NCBI GenBank assembly: GCA_047495785.1
Contig: JBLDXI010000017.1
Coordinates: 2,976,001-3,040,000, forward strand
Origin: Lepidodermella squamata
Lineage: Eukaryota > Animalia > Gastrotricha
DNA: 64,000 bases
Direction: 5' to 3'
The notes beneath the pieces are model-generated. The model ran no database searches. It was not told the DNA's origin and saw only the letters and a program-made list of their open reading frames with translations. Below, piece after piece: positions 35,779-42,692 of the stretch. Position numbers and translations under genes: made by a program. Each line of letters begins with the position of its first letter. The first letter of the stretch is position 1.

Positions 35779-38121
35779 CTAGCTGCAGTTGAACCACCAT
35801 TCTGTAATTGATAACGCGACGCTCCACCGACCAGGGTCTGTTGAAGTATTGCTGGCATCGCCGCTATTTCGACTGCGAAGATCTCGGCTAACCGAGTCAA
35901 CGGATGCTTCCGGGCTGTTGCTGCGCGAAGGCGACCACACCCAATAACTGCCGTTAGACGCGAAAAAGTAGTTGCGGCCGTTGTAGAGCATTGCCGCTTG
36001 GAGCAGCGGCGGCCGGGCCGGTAGCTTGCGAAGAACCGGGTGCTCTGACAGCGGCGCCTGGGTGCTGTTGCCGGACTGTAGTGGCGAAAACGTCCAGTAA
36101 CGGTCGCCGGAAACAAAGTAAATGAGCTCATCGCTGACCAGTTGAAATATGACAGCACCGGGAGCGTTAATGCCCTTGAAGCCTGAGAGTATCTACAAAT
36201 TTAATTGAAATGAAAATTCATTCATCGCGAAATTTCTAAATTTTCTAACCCTTTTAGGATAGCCGTTGTTGAGGATAAACTGTAGCCGGAAAGTTCCATC
36301 TCTGAGATTGCGGCTTGCAGATCTAGCAGCAACATTCTGCCGCAAAAATTCGCAATTAAATTAATTTTCGAGCTTTTCTAAATTGTTAAAATTACCTGTT
36401 GACCAAGTAAAAACTGTTGGACTAGCAGTTGGAGTAATGAAGGGCCTTGCAGAAGCTTTAAATCAGCTTCATCGAGACTAGCAGCTGATTTTCGAATTTC
36501 GTATCGCCAATAGTCGTCTCCCTAGAAAAAAAACATTGCAAATTCAATAAATTTTGCAACCCCGCAAAATTACCGAGAACAGGTAGATGTATCGGCGATC
36601 GAACGAAGTTCCACTGTGAACGTACGTAACTAGAGCTGAGATCTGTGTAAGCGGGGCGTTGGGGAAGACACTCGAAACACCTTTAGGGTAGCCGGGATAA
36701 ATGCCGCCTTCATCGTTTATACGAAAAACATCCTGGCCTATGATTGCAAAAGTAGAATCAGGCTGGTCAGCACCTTGCGTTATAGCGTTAATGCCAGCTC
36801 CGGGCTTGAATGCGCAGGACATTGGCGTTGCTGGCCGTGGCCACGCTGTCGACGTTGGCGGCAACACCGAGGCTTCTTCGGTTGTAGTAGTTTTGGGCGG
36901 CAGAACCTCAACTCGCCTGTCATTTATCTCGGGAGGCGGCAAGGCGGGCTCGTTGGGCAAAACAGGCGGCTGTTGGCCGGGTAAAGGTTCGCCGTAAAGC
37001 GCTTGAATACCGTCAATGTCATCTTGAGTCAACTTCGCAGCTCTGCTCATTGCAGACTGGGTGAAAAATGGGTACATGACCGCATTCCGATCAGTTGTAT
37101 GATCAAGCCCGATTGCATGGCCAGTTTCATGCAGTGAGACATGAGCGAGAGAAATTCCTAGAATTATGTTAAGGAGGAATATTATAACCATGAATCACTC
37201 ACTTCCTGGCGAAGGCCGAACGTTCCAGCTGTCATCATCGTCAAAGTGCACATCACCTGGCAATCCATAACCTAGCGATATTCGTCTGGGTGGGAAAAAA
37301 GAGTGAGCGAGAATTCCTCCAGGGCCATCAAATGACTAAGAAAAATCATAATTGATGCCTATAATGGTAAATATACTAATAATTATTACCTCTCCATCAC
37401 CGTGATCAGTTGTCGCCCATTTAATTTCCATTAGTGGCTGTTTGGTAACTTTGAGGAACTGCAGCCGGCTAACCGCGGCCCATTTGCTCAGTGTCTCATT
37501 GATCGCGGCGTCAATGGCATCCCGATCGATATCAGCTGTATACTTAGTAATCGTGTAAGTCAAATTCGTTGTAGACCATTTCGTGCCGAACAGCACGTAG
37601 TTCGCCATAGGATACAGCGAACTGGCAGCGCGTTGCACCGCTTCGGCAATCGCCGTAGCATTTCGAGAATTGGCATCGGTGACGCCGCATCGAGGCCAGT
37701 TCATAGCCTCCAGGGTTTCGTTGTCCAACGTGCCCGATTGGTTTATGTTCGCCATACGTTGGAACGACAAAATAGCCGCCTTCACAGGGTCAACGCTATT
37801 GCGCGTACTTCCCGCAGATCGCGCAACAGCCGCTTGAGAATATTTACTTCCGGTTCGATTTAACCATTTTGCCGATAGATAACCGAAACGAATCAAGTAA
37901 TTCTAATAAAAAATGCTTTCGTTATATTATTATAGGCGGTACGGAATGTTTGGACAACAAACCATGCCGGCGTTAGTGTCCACAATTTTGCTCGATGAAT
38001 TACTGCTGTTTTGCGCATCTTGACTGTTCGTCTCATTGCTGGTAGTTGCCAAAGTTGTCGTTATTATCGTTGCGATAACAGTCGTGGTGAAAACGATGAA
38101 CAGGCGCCAGCGCAATGTCAT
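35779..38121 (-). CDS. Matrix metalloproteinase (M10A) 3
   Basis: [11 protein letters not shown] signal, [40 protein letters not shown], Pro-rich hinge; ends WFNCS*. Confidence 0.92.
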
Positions 38122-39208
38122 AGCTCGCGCAATCAATTTAACGGGCTGTAAAAATCTGGCTCGTTATTTTCGCTCTATACACACTGCTATCTGGCCGCGG
38201 CGCCTATTCGTATATAGCTTGTATAACACCTATGAGAGGTGGCTAAAAACGTGACATCAAGATCGTGTGATGTACAGAGCCGAGTCGAAATGACAACAAA
38301 TTAAGGTGTATAGCAGTTTCCGCTATGCTCCTTATCTATTATATATCTACGATCAAAAAAGACGCGAAAAACAACAGGTCACGTTTTCTGGAATAACGAC
38401 CCAGCAAAACACGTAATTTAGTTGGCATTGTGAAAGGCTGCTGCTGCAGCTGCCCAAGGAAGGCAGGAGGTAACTAACGATGCGATTGCAGGATGTGTTT
38501 GCGAGATGGGTATAATGACGGTGGTTGAGTGGGCGCCAACGTGCCGAGTAATTGATGGCTAATATACAGCACTTGGTACTGCGAGCTCCCCAGCCAAAAA
38601 AACACTGTGTGCTCAACGCAAATAAATTTGCGATTGCGCAAGTTGATGAGTCGAGGTAAATGTCACCAAACGTAATAACAATAATAATATGAATTGATGC
38701 CGTCAGGCGGCGGCACAATCACTATCATATGTTCTCCGCTACGCTCTGCATTCGGCACGACTCCGTGACGAAAGAAGTATAGTGGACTGAAAAATAACAA
38801 ATAATCGCGCACACACTTGGTTACAAAACCAACCGGTTGTTCTCGGTACACCTTTTGTCCAGAAGTCCGATTTCACGGTGGGCATTACAGTCAAAATATT
38901 TGTTAAATAACATTCCGCGGTAGTGAAATATAGGTAAACCGCGTTATTGAGCTCATTTCCGCACATTATATCAAAAACGCAATTTCAAGTGCGGGAAAAA
39001 ACGCCACGTTTGTTAGCGTAAATAGCTTAAATTACTCATTTTGTTTTATATACCGAAAAAACACGTAGCCCCCCACGTGGATGCAAGAGTGACATTCGGC
39101 TGAGTTTCATTTTTTAATAATGTACCAGAAAATGCACTGATACCGGTGCTTTCACTATTTATTCGAAAATCGAGGCAACAAAAATCAATGGGTAAATCGT
39201 AGAAAGAT

Positions 39209-39653
39209 TTAATAAAATGAATCAGGGCACTGGCGCCCAACACAGTTACAGGCATCCGTTTGGCAGCAGAATGAGCGAGCCCGCATGGCGTCGTTTGGAC
39301 GTGGCTGCCTATTGTTGCCATCGACCGACCCACCAGGGCAATCGTTGACTTGGGCACAATTTTGCATTACCCGTCCGTCTTGAATCGATAGCTAAAGATG
39401 AAGATTCAGCATTTAGAAATTTTGATGAAATCATAGCTATAATACACTTACCTTACAAAACGGAAAAGATGGGCAATCTTTGAGGCGCTGAAACTCACAG
39501 CCTTGCATGACGCTGTTGCAGCGATAACACATGATCGCATCTTAAAAAATTAAACCGTTCGAGCCGAGGATATTAAAATGAATTAAGCAAACCCAATGGA
39601 TGCGGGATCAAAGCCATCAGGACCAAACAGCAACAAAATAAATTCCAGTACAT
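39209..39653 (-). CDS. Secreted Ly6/uPAR (three-finger fold) protein, 3 exons; not in the ORF track
   Basis: Exons ~39653-39593, 39540-39452 and 39391-39209 splice to MYWNLFCCCLVLMALIPHPLDA-IMCYRCNSVMQGCEFQRLKDCPSFPFCK-LSIQDGRVMQNCAQVNDCPGGSVDGNNRQPRPNDAMRARSFCCQTDACNCVGRQCPDSFY*. Carries CYxC and CCxxDxCN, and a phase-1 intron after the signal exon. Confidence 0.88.
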
Positions 39654-39985
39654 TTTCTTGGAATGAACAAATAGCAGAAAATGATAAATCTGACTACTCA
39701 GATGAAAGTAAGCAGAAAACACCATGTGGCTGCAACATATTTATCAAAGGCGCGAACCATGTGACAATAGGCAATTTTTACGAAAACATGTCATTTTATT
39801 AAGAAACGTCAAGTACAGAAAAGCAACACAATATGAAGTTTTGTCTTTGGATACAGCTCGGCCTAAATAAGCCATGCAAGATTGATAACCATTCCAACGG
39901 GCAGCAATCGGTGGATGAGAAAATCTGAAAGAATACCAAAATGTATTGCGATTGGCAATAAATAATGAATGAAAAAGAATAGAAT

Positions 39986-40054
39986 TGATTTCAGAAACGG
40001 CGGAAGATGAAATCATTTCTATCATATACTCGGTAAGGGTTATCATCATAGATA
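39986..40054 (-). ncRNA. C/D snoRNA, SNORD87-like (28S AAACGGCGGGA)
   Basis: C ATGATGA (40049-43), D' ATGA, C' ATGATT, D guide TTCCGCCGTTT-CTGA (39994-91). Confidence 0.83.
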
Positions 40055-40213
40055 ACAGTTCAGGTCGCCGTTTAAACCATCCTCAAAATTACCTTAAACG
40101 ACGAATCATGTCCAAGTGATTTCGAAGATTCGCAGCGAACAACCCTTTAAAAAGGAAAATAAAATGAATTATGAACTGAAAATAAAATAATGCAATTTTT
40201 TGAGATAGTGAGC

Positions 40214-40284
40214 TTAAATCAGAATAGCCATTCTTATCAATTTCTAAAATCATTTGTCCCTAGCTATGTAAATCATCATATGAA
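40214..40284 (-). ncRNA. Double-guide C/D snoRNA (28S UGUCCCUA, SNORD53-like; 18S UGGCCGUUCUU, SNORD32-like)
   Basis: C ATGATGA (40279-73), D' guide TAGCTAGGGACA, D guide AAGAATGGCTA (two G-U pairs), D CTGA (40222-19). Confidence 0.78.
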
Positions 40285-40443
40285 CAGAGAGTAAATAAAA
40301 TACGCAAAACAAACGAACCTGGTGCGTTATTGAGATTGACTGCTAGGTGAATGATCGAAATCGAGACAGCCATAGAACTGAAAAAGAGAAGACGTATTAA
40401 CAGGGCTCAGAGGATTTCTAGCAGGTTTGAGTAGTGATTTGGA

Positions 40444-40509
40444 ATAAATCAGTTTAGCCAGTATAATCAAAAATTTTCATATGTCCCTGGCAGAGTTTCA
40501 TCATAATAA
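40444..40509 (-). ncRNA. C/D snoRNA, diverged paralog of 40214-40284
   Basis: C ATGATGA (40504-498), AGGGACA-t-ATGA, TTGAT, TGGCTA-aa-CTGA (40452-49). Confidence 0.75.
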
Positions 40510-40655
40510 GTTTACAAGGGGGATGCAATCGAAAGCTCACCTCTTCAAGAAGGCATTAACGAAGCCAGCATATCGTCGTTCAGCCAGTTCTGTAACATAA
40601 GGGAAAGTGTCAAAAAAGCCAAAACTAGCAATATGAGAGATTATCATTCTCTACT

Positions 40656-40733
40656 TAATGTCAGATAAATGCCTCGTACTTGAAATCACAACAATCATAT
40701 TTTGTAGCCAAACGTGTTTCTCATCATCCTTAA
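40656..40733 (-). ncRNA. C/D snoRNA, SNORD15 D-guide / snR13-like, copy b
   Basis: C ATGATGA (40727-21), D CTGA (40664-61); guide ACGAGGCATTT; paralog of 41381-41456. Confidence 0.87.
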
Positions 40734-40845
40734 TATATCAGCAAATAAGTAACAAACCAACCTTGAGCTGACGTAGGAAGGCTGGGCAGTCGCGATTATC
40801 GTTTCGAAATTGGAGTTGATCTGCAAGTGAAAATAACACTTGTAA

Positions 40846-40985
40846 TAATGTGACCTCCGAAGTCCCACCAAATCAGAAAATTGAACATTTCAACTTCGGT
40901 CCCTTTCAGATGCCGAATTTCTTTTGCATTTGAATGAGACACACGCGCCCGTTTCGGGCATCGCATGACACTTTGAATGCATTGT
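40846..40985 (-). ncRNA. Structured intronic RNA, H/ACA-like candidate
   Basis: Hairpin TGCATT...GCCC-GAAAC-GGGC...AATGCA, then AAAGAA (ANANNA), then hairpin GACCGAAGT...ACTTCGGAGGTC followed directly by ACA-TTA. Confidence 0.55.
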
Positions 40986-41162
40986 GGAAAATTATTCATG
41001 AAGAAAGACTAACCATTCAAACCAGCCACAGAATAAATCGCCAGCTCAAAGTTTTATTGCGGAAGGGTTGTTGACAATCGAGCGCCAGCGCCAATCCAGC
41101 ACCTGAAAAACCAATGAACTATTAACAAGAGATAAAAAAATACCACTCCAAGTGAAATAGAC

Positions 41163-41228
41163 TGTGTCAGTTTTAAAGGGTTAAAATCACAGTTTTCATT
41201 AGAGGTGTCAAGGTGATCATCATAAAAA
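41163..41228 (-). ncRNA. C/D snoRNA against 28S AGAGGUGUCA (snR48/SNORD60 region)
   Basis: C ATGATGA (41223-17), D' guide TGACACCTCT-a-ATGA, C' GTGATT, D CTGA (41170-67). Confidence 0.8.
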
Positions 41229-41380
41229 CTTCAAACTTTGAAAGCATCAGTTTTTTACTCACCAGGATTGAACACATGGATAATTCGTTGCTGACCGATC
41301 GATGGACGGGGATCTGCAGAGAAAAGAAAATGTTTAACCGATTGATTGATACAGTGTGACTGATTAAATTGCAACTTCGA

Positions 41381-41456
41381 ATTATTCAGGCGAATGCCTC
41401 GTACTTGAAATCATTCTTCTCATATTTGTAGCCAACGGTGTTGTCATCATCAATTA
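41381..41456 (-). ncRNA. C/D snoRNA, SNORD15 D-guide / snR13-like, copy a
   Basis: C ATGATGA (41450-44), D CTGA (41389-86). Guide ACGAGGCATT complements 28S AAUGCCUCGU. Confidence 0.85.
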
Positions 41457-41627
41457 TGATATCAAGGATAATAAGTGGGGAAACATACCGATTTATCGAA
41501 ACCCCATGCGATGAACGTTCAATTGCCATTGCGCAAGGCGTTGCATAGATAGTAGCGTGATCTGTGATTTAATAAAATCAAGAATTAGCGAATCATATAA
41601 GCAGAAAAATGGTTCTACCTATACAGT

Positions 41628-41697
41628 GATTTTCAGAAAATTTGATAGTTGGTATCATTAAATTCAAAGAATTCGCCATTATGATCATCATAATATC
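41628..41697 (-). ncRNA. C/D snoRNA, target not identified
   Basis: C ATGATGA (41691-85), D' TTGA, C' ATGATA, D CTGA (41636-33), terminal stem TGAT/ATCA; 71 nt from the 3' splice site. Confidence 0.75.
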
Positions 41698-41858
41698 ATA
41701 GTAACTCAAACATTACGGAAACTCACCTCGAATGGGTAGCTGCAGCAGGAGCTGCCGAATGTCGCTTCAGGTGAATCATAACTCACGACCTGAAGAACAA
41801 AAAATGAATAGTAATGCAAGCCATAACAATCAAGAAGATTAGCTATGATGAATGTTGA

Positions 41859-41925
41859 ACGTTCAGTAAAAAGTAAATAGAATCATAGAACTCTCATACT
41901 CGTCATCTAATATGCATCATTAGAA
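41859..41925 (-). ncRNA. C/D snoRNA, snR75 / U15 D'-guide-like
   Basis: C ATGATGC (41920-14), D' ATGA, D CTGA (41866-63). Guide ATTAGATGACGAG complements conserved 28S CUCGUCAUCUAAU. Confidence 0.85.
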
Positions 41926-42692
41926 CCTTATAAGCGAAATATGCGGAGAAATAGCGCTTACCTTGAATTAATACTGGATTTATCAACCGTCAAATCAAGG
42001 TCATCCTTGTAGATGAAACCAGAAGGAGAATTGCCTAATCAAGAGAGCTTGACAAGAACTGGTACTCATCTGGGGCTAACGCGGCGGTATTTGAAGGGAT
42101 TAAGTCCACGCCGTCGGGTTAGAGCATTATGCCGGCGTGGTTAGCAACACGTGTTTAACGGTGAAGATCATAGCAATATTATTAAAATTAATTGAATTCA
42201 TATATTATATAAATTTATTAAATACAACGATCAAATTTTACTAATTAGAAATGAATTTATTGCTGCATGTTTTGATGTGATTCCGCGCCAAAATCTGAGC
42301 CACAGCTTTGCTTGAAGCTTCACTGATGACTCGTTGGAGAAGTTTGGAAGCCTGGGAGTAAAGAAATGAGAGACATCGAGGCAGCTTGAATAAGCGGCAT
42401 TATCGATGATTTTAAGTGTTCGATCTGTATTTTCTACGGAAATGATAAGGCTTGGTGTAAGCATGAACTCTTCATTATCACAATGACTTATCCTTATCAG
42501 CAGAAACCTCATCATGAGGACTCGCTGAGGCGCGCCATATCGGTCATTGCGGCTGCAATTTTCACCTGACCGCATTATCCAATGCATGTGTCCCAATACA
42601 TTTCCTATTTAGAGCAGGTCCAGCAGTAGGTGATAAGCATTTCCCGGGGATCAAACCCCATCATTTTCGCTCTTGCAAAACAAAAACAAGCC

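Follow-up and report, generated by a model that had tools for sequence, protein, structure and literature searches.

A minus-strand Ly6/uPAR gene of the gastrotrich Lepidodermella squamata that probably encodes a secreted three-finger protein with an extra cysteine pair

Secreted LU proteins are well known, with SLURP-1, SLURP-2 and the snake toxins as the classic cases, and SLURPs act on nAChRs. Other Ly6 proteins, such as CD59, GPIHBP1, Lynx1 and PSCA or the insect proteins Quiver, Boudin and Bero, are GPI-anchored; in a GPI signal, a small omega residue is followed by a spacer and then by a hydrophobic tail 10–20 residues long. To our knowledge, the LU proteins of Gastrotricha have not been described. 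A 2026 survey of invertebrates found both secreted and anchored LU forms across animal phyla (PMC13719153), and its main text makes no mention of Gastrotricha (PMC13719153). Given that distribution, the premise of the original prediction for the present locus, namely that secreted LU proteins are unusual among invertebrates, is a weak one.

The gene described here lies within a 64,000-nt stretch of the Lepidodermella squamata genome, referred to as the window. Like SLURP-1 and SLURP-2, its predicted product combines a putative signal peptide with a single LU domain of the 10-Cys type and has no GPI signal, and, again like the SLURPs, it is an offshoot of a family with anchored members (such as Lynx1 in the case of the SLURPs). 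No sequence relationship extends past the fold, however, and the anchor would have been lost independently, in a different phylum; in addition, the extra C-x4-C pair that follows CN in the gastrotrich protein does not occur in SLURPs. The GPI-anchored Ly6 proteins listed above share with it the C-x2-C start and the CC-x4-CN end of the domain, whereas the gastrotrich protein lacks the hydrophobic C-terminal signal, carries a sixth cysteine pair and falls below Pfam thresholds. Snake three-finger toxins are secreted and anchor-less, as the gastrotrich protein probably is, and they are found among the structural matches of a model of its paralog L014. Most of these toxins nevertheless lack the finger-I disulfide that the gastrotrich protein has, and neither a venom context nor a sequence relationship connects the two. 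Nothing suggests that the gastrotrich protein is toxic, and nothing in the analysis ties the gene to nAChRs, which had been named among the receptors on which secreted forms often act.

Gene structure and fold

Direct reading of the minus strand bears out the three small exons that had been described, both in their coordinates and in what they encode, and the introns match those of paralogous genes (Table 1). At the junction of exons 1 and 2, ttttaag|AT completes an Asp codon, and exon 2 ends in AAG|GTAAGT. The phase 1 intron sits two nucleotides ahead of the codon for Ala in A-I-x-C-Y/F-x-C, as it does in the paralogs, while the phase 0 intron, one codon past Cys5, is kept in six of them. The leader exons of the paralogs comprise 17–25 codons and also end in phase 1, and their first introns span 49–86 nt. 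The donor of intron 1 is weak; as GTT-type donors (gttggc, gttagt) are used in paralogs, GTTTGC is not out of character. Because each of the 12 cysteines, and each intron in position as well as in phase, has its counterpart in paralogs across the genome, the gene model stands beyond chance, and on the sequence evidence the three-exon structure is well supported. An in-frame ATG at 39725 was considered as the start and is less likely, since it lies 5' of the two acceptor-like sites and its use would leave the leader buried.

Table 1. Coordinates of the Ly6 gene and of neighbouring features (positions in the window)
Feature	Position	Strand	Description
Poly(A) signal AATAAA of upstream same-strand gene	39800-39795	minus	about 141 nt before the ATG at 39653
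Candidate spliced-leader acceptor TAG	39696-39694	minus	behind a pyrimidine tract, direct reading
Second candidate acceptor AAG	39659-39657	minus	behind a pyrimidine tract, direct reading
Exon 1	39653-39593	minus	ATG (39653-39651), 20-codon hydrophobic leader MYWNLFCCCLVLMALIPHPL and one G; phase 1
Intron 1	39592-39541	minus	52 nt, phase 1; donor GTTTGC from 39592, acceptor ttttaag
Exon 2	39540-39452	minus	(D)AIMCYRCNSVMQGCEFQRLKDCPSFPFCK; Cys 1-5 of the LU domain, i.e., finger I and start of finger II
Intron 2	39451-39392	minus	60 nt, phase 0; donor GTAAGT, acceptor tctttag
Exon 3	39391-39209	minus	LSIQDGRVMQNC...FCCQTDACNCVGRQCPDSFY (full exon reading LSIQDGRVMQNCAQVNDCPGGSVDGNNRQPRPNDAMRARSFCCQTDACNCVGRQCPDSFY); Cys 6-12, PDSFY, stop TAA (39211-39209)
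Motif C-N-C-V-G-R-Q-C	39250-39227	minus	last canonical Cys and extra C-x4-C pair
Alternative-frame open stretch	39221-39159	minus	encodes FILLNLSTIYPLIFVASIFE*; 20 hydrophobic residues, stop overlapping AATAAA
Poly(A) signal AATAAA of the Ly6 gene	39163-39158	minus	46 nt 3' of the stop

The encoded precursor consists of a hydrophobic leader followed by an LU domain. Of the 12 cysteines in this domain, 10 are canonical and two form a C-x4-C pair directly after CN. The canonical framework is complete, from the N-terminal CYRC (C-x2-C) to CCQTDACN (CC-x4-CN). Within the leader, a 12-residue hydrophobic core reaches a best 9-residue hydropathy of 3.2 and is not preceded by a basic n-region; the (L/P)-D-A junction before the first cysteine is kept in the paralogs. 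The third loop, located between Cys7 and Cys8, had been singled out as a long polar insert. It is indeed present, but at 23 residues it is not exceptional, being close to the median of the subfamily (range 10 to ~56). Here, N-N-R-Q aligns with a paired-basic K-K-R/K-R site of the genes on contig C13, a site that the present gene lacks.

Submitted to Pfam one at a time, the exons matched no family and returned only noise (CPCFC, E 0.014, over 8 residues), and the paralogs aligned with positions 2–72 of the 72 positions of Toxin_TOLIP at 18.2 bits, below the cut-off of 21.2. A profile of the subfamily, which includes both LU-coding exons of the present gene, found its best match in CD59, along the full length (E 0.014); the PDB matches, 19 in total, are without exception three-finger proteins (CD59, TGF-beta receptor 1, BMPR2). 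Together with the signal-peptide-like leader, this match agrees with the signal peptide and 10-Cys LU domain that had been predicted. The proposed check with AlphaFold and Foldseek was run on paralog L014, which is ~40% identical to the present protein with all cysteines conserved, so that the model is one of L014. The AlphaFold2 model, built from a 22-row family alignment, has a mean pLDDT of 83 and adopts a three-finger fold. The top Foldseek matches were all LU proteins or three-finger toxins (uPAR, SLURP-2, Lynx1, CD59, snake toxins), with E values near 0.01 and a probability of ~1; SLURP-1 was likewise among the fold matches of the model. VIA-align comparison of residues 1–82 gave best matches with Z between 8.1 and 8.5, among them GPIHBP1 (Z 8.5, rmsd 3.1, 76 residues aligned), uPAR domain 3 (8.4) and Lynx1 (8.2). 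For exon 3, ESM Atlas leads pointed to SLURP1, PATE, cytotoxin and TGF-beta receptor II, all with scores <0.9 and taken as hints only. Judged from its sequence, the encoded protein is a member of the LU/three-finger family.

The gastrotrich C-N-C-x-G-x-Q-C subfamily

To place the gene among its relatives, the genome (151 contigs, 121.2 Mb) was searched. A six-frame search with exon 3 recovered only distant paralogs, 35–49% identical and with the tail motif in common; the closest is 38–49% identical over ~50 residues, and on contig C17 the Ly6 gene stands alone. A degenerate DNA pattern for C-N-C-[VI]-G-x-Q-C was found at 12 genomic sites and at none in the reversed control, and a profile search and further loci yielded the motif variants CNCAGNQC and CNCFGKQC. 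The subfamily thus delineated numbers at least 15 genes, with clusters on contigs C13 and C24 and further members on C28 and others. Its common traits are a D-A-I-x-C leader junction and the Q-x-C-A and D-C-P motifs in finger III, and the extra cysteine pair stands directly past CN in every member. The present gene shares this C-x4-C pair and both intron positions with the subfamily. The end-to-end alignment of both its LU-coding exons with the single-exon paralogs L012–L014 on contig C24, in which one exon encodes the whole LU domain, places 12 of 12 cysteines in register.

The extra cysteine pair that had been noted in the protein is accordingly real, but it is not peculiar to this gene, as the motif recurs in at least 15 genes of the genome. 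The C-x4-C spacing makes it plausible that a sixth disulfide closes locally and ties a small knot at the domain's base. The wider point of the locus is the subfamily itself, which is gastrotrich-specific and in which a sixth cysteine pair is conserved immediately ahead of the anchor site. This pair is the sole mildly new aspect of the finding, and it belongs to the subfamily rather than to the Ly6 gene alone.

Ten subfamily genes encode hydrophobic GPI-type tails of 26–44 residues past the motif, and in the seven genes with the exact motif the best 12-residue tail hydropathy lies between 1.8 and 3.2. In the anchored members, small residues followed by the hydrophobic tail begin within a few residues of the extra pair. 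The present gene differs from the subfamily in lacking the anchor tail that most members have, and its identity to any of them is 41–49% at most. A tree of the last exons is poorly resolved and does not place the gene, but the two tail-less genes stand apart in it; as they are not grouped, repeated loss of the tail is probable, albeit with weak support from the tree.

Several members deviate from the common plan. The second tail-less gene, L010 (G000:C13:1220030-1220053, minus), ends in CNCVGYQCS*, one residue past the motif; a hydrophobic stretch, LHLPAFLVIARLLIM, follows ~75 nt downstream in the same frame, past three stops and behind an acceptor-like site, and the 3' end of L010 may have been mis-read or may be alternatively spliced. 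L013 and L014 (G000:C24:2820811-2820834, minus, and 2821853-2821876, plus) form a head-to-head pair from which intron 2 has been lost. In both, the place of a GPI signal is taken by a tail of 58–63 residues that is rich in Gly, Met, Tyr and Gln, of low complexity and without a hydrophobic end. At L006 (G000:C1:3183688-3183711), CNCIGDQC occurs in a different, larger gene whose exon ends five codons further on at a good CAG|GTAATT donor, which means that small Ly6 proteins are not the only carriers of the motif.

The C-terminus and the probable loss of the anchor

Past the last cysteine, the protein continues for only five residues, PDSFY, none of which lies in a hydrophobic stretch. There is hence no GPI signal at the encoded C-terminus, as had been stated. 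Direct reading revealed no GT donor between the last Cys codon (39229–39227) and the stop (39211–39209), and use of the sole nearby GT would remove the last cysteine. With no GT before the stop, splicing to a downstream tail exon that keeps the sixth cysteine pair is unlikely. A downstream exon supplying a GPI tail, the finding that would have overturned the idea of a soluble product, was therefore rejected: no donor exists, the paralogs encode their tails in the same exon as the motif, the gene's own poly(A) signal follows shortly after the stop (Table 1), and the next gene lies ~1.1 kb further. That neighbour is a matrix-metalloproteinase-like gene on the minus strand (37500–38125), with a signal peptide that starts near 38120 and, around position 37700, a PRCGVTD cysteine switch.

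The encoded Ly6 protein thus lacks a lipid-anchor tail, unlike most of its relatives in the genome, and is hence probably secreted. We lean, at slightly better than an even chance, towards a genuine gene of a gastrotrich-specific Ly6/uPAR subfamily whose product is a soluble three-finger protein that arose by an independent, SLURP-like loss of the anchor. The leader would probably be cleaved after the conserved D-A just before I-x-C-Y-x-C, which would leave a mature protein of ~88–90 residues with five canonical disulfides and a putative sixth as a small C-terminal knot. As encoded in the assembly, the product would be exported in soluble form. With its variable fingers it could bind the ectodomain of a surface protein and so serve as a diffusible ligand or modulator; the likeliest contact surface would be the third finger, which is basic and polar.

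If the protein is secreted, it represents one more independent case in which a membrane-tethered Ly6 protein became a diffusible factor. The same step gave rise to the mammalian SLURPs and, by domain loss, to the snake three-finger toxins. Among proteins of so common a type, a missing anchor is ordinary variation that leaves the understanding of three-finger proteins unchanged, and the sequence implies neither a function nor a target.

Transcription context and alternative readings

The Ly6 gene follows another gene on the same strand, a putative snoRNA host. The distance from the poly(A) signal of that gene to the ATG had been given as ~130 nt and measures ~141 nt. Such proximity on one strand is consistent with the three exons being the 3' part of the upstream transcript, dependent on the host promoter and transcribed either through read-through or because they form the second cistron in a spliced-leader operon. 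Two acceptor-like sites without a paired donor just 5' of the ATG point in the same direction; either of them, if used, drops the upstream ATG at 39725 and leaves 39653 as the first ATG. The upstream gene, on the other hand, has an AATAAA of its own, and we regard transcription from the host promoter as possible but rather doubtful. As it concerns transcription only and yields the same protein, this arrangement is compatible with a secreted Ly6 protein. Rfam, applied with gathering thresholds to the whole window (1–64000), including the putative snoRNA host stretch at 39780–42090, detected no family; if the snoRNAs in that stretch are real, they fall outside the curated families. We consider it highly improbable that all of these elements combine into one picture. 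In it, the gene would have lost its anchor within a gastrotrich-only subfamily and would make a soluble modulator of ‘prototoxin-like’ kind whose sixth disulfide forms a C-terminal knot. The coding region would be a downstream cistron in a spliced-leader operon that begins with a non-coding snoRNA host gene, and the protein would act at a distance to tune one of the animal's greatly expanded Cys-loop channels.

A different history is raised by the hydrophobic open stretch in an alternative frame at the 3' end of the gene (Table 1), which may be the relic of a GPI-signal tail lost by frameshift, although a feature of this kind is expected by chance at a rate of about 3–26%. Its 12-residue hydropathy of 2.04 falls within the range of the paralog tails, its stop overlaps the AATAAA, and across the window such a feature accompanies just 3% of the stop codons. 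The 3' flank is 47% T, however, and shuffles of this T-rich flank reproduce the feature in 26% of cases; it is also present in 3 of 39 frames of the paralog 3' flanks. Since the rate depends on the null model, the evidence for a relic is weak, with a likelihood ratio of perhaps 4–10.

On this basis, the gene could until recently have been an ordinary GPI-anchored member, with a single-base frameshift in the last five codons cutting off the anchor. It would then be a pseudogene of recent origin, a null allele or a polymorphism carried by the single animal that was sequenced; an error in the assembly is the least likely of these options. The anchoring of ten paralogs and the lack of any transcript-derived protein among 1.84 billion representatives accord with such a loss. 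Against it, the putative tail would extend ~22 residues past the last cysteine, shorter than any paralog tail (26–44), and the remainder of the gene is intact, with its 12 cysteines and splice sites. The L. squamata assembly was produced with PacBio HiFi reads from one animal after multiple displacement amplification (MDA) and has a Merqury QV of ~58 (PMC11660948). At that quality (PMC11660948), and with a T run of just 4 bases, an error in the assembly is unlikely. Overall, we judge a recent frameshift to be unlikely. Were the relic real, the shift would be a real mutation, and the soluble product either a recent innovation or an accident or null allele.

Relatives were also sought outside the genome. 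HMMER with exon 3 over 1.84 billion representatives returned neither a self-match nor a true relative, word-index protein searches were blank for exon 3 as well as for paralog L014, and JGI metagenome contigs contained no exact match to the 29-nt motif region that would represent an independent copy of the 3' end. In these public protein collections the gene is thus represented by neither an annotated nor a transcript-derived protein, which fits, as far as the collections go, its description as unannotated. Because L014 is also missing from the word index, the absence of the Ly6 gene there says little about its expression. That the frame is intact but belongs to a silent or dying gene, a divergent singleton copy that is not expressed and makes no protein, agrees with the lack of a close paralog (best 38–49% over ~50 residues), the empty protein searches and the weak first donor, but is improbable, as the 12 cysteines, Q-x-C-A, D-C-P, CC-x4-CN, the phases of both introns, a start context preceded by AG and a pyrimidine tract, and the poly(A) signal have all been kept despite a divergence deep enough to destroy them without selection, and L014 is equally missing from the word index.

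The HMMER search did return 11 matches of 963–3337 residues with 3–10 matched stretches each, which were rejected as non-homologous, their scores being summed over repeats similar to V-N-D-x-P...D of the third loop. Three of these proteins were scanned and are adhesin-like and multi-domain, with cadherin, Big_9 or Ig-like repeats. The third-loop codons at 39330–39360 (V-N-D-C-P-G-G-S-V-D-G-N-N) mimic the V-N-D-x-P repeat of bacterial cadherin-like/Big_9 adhesins and produce phmmer false positives with E values down to 1e-16.
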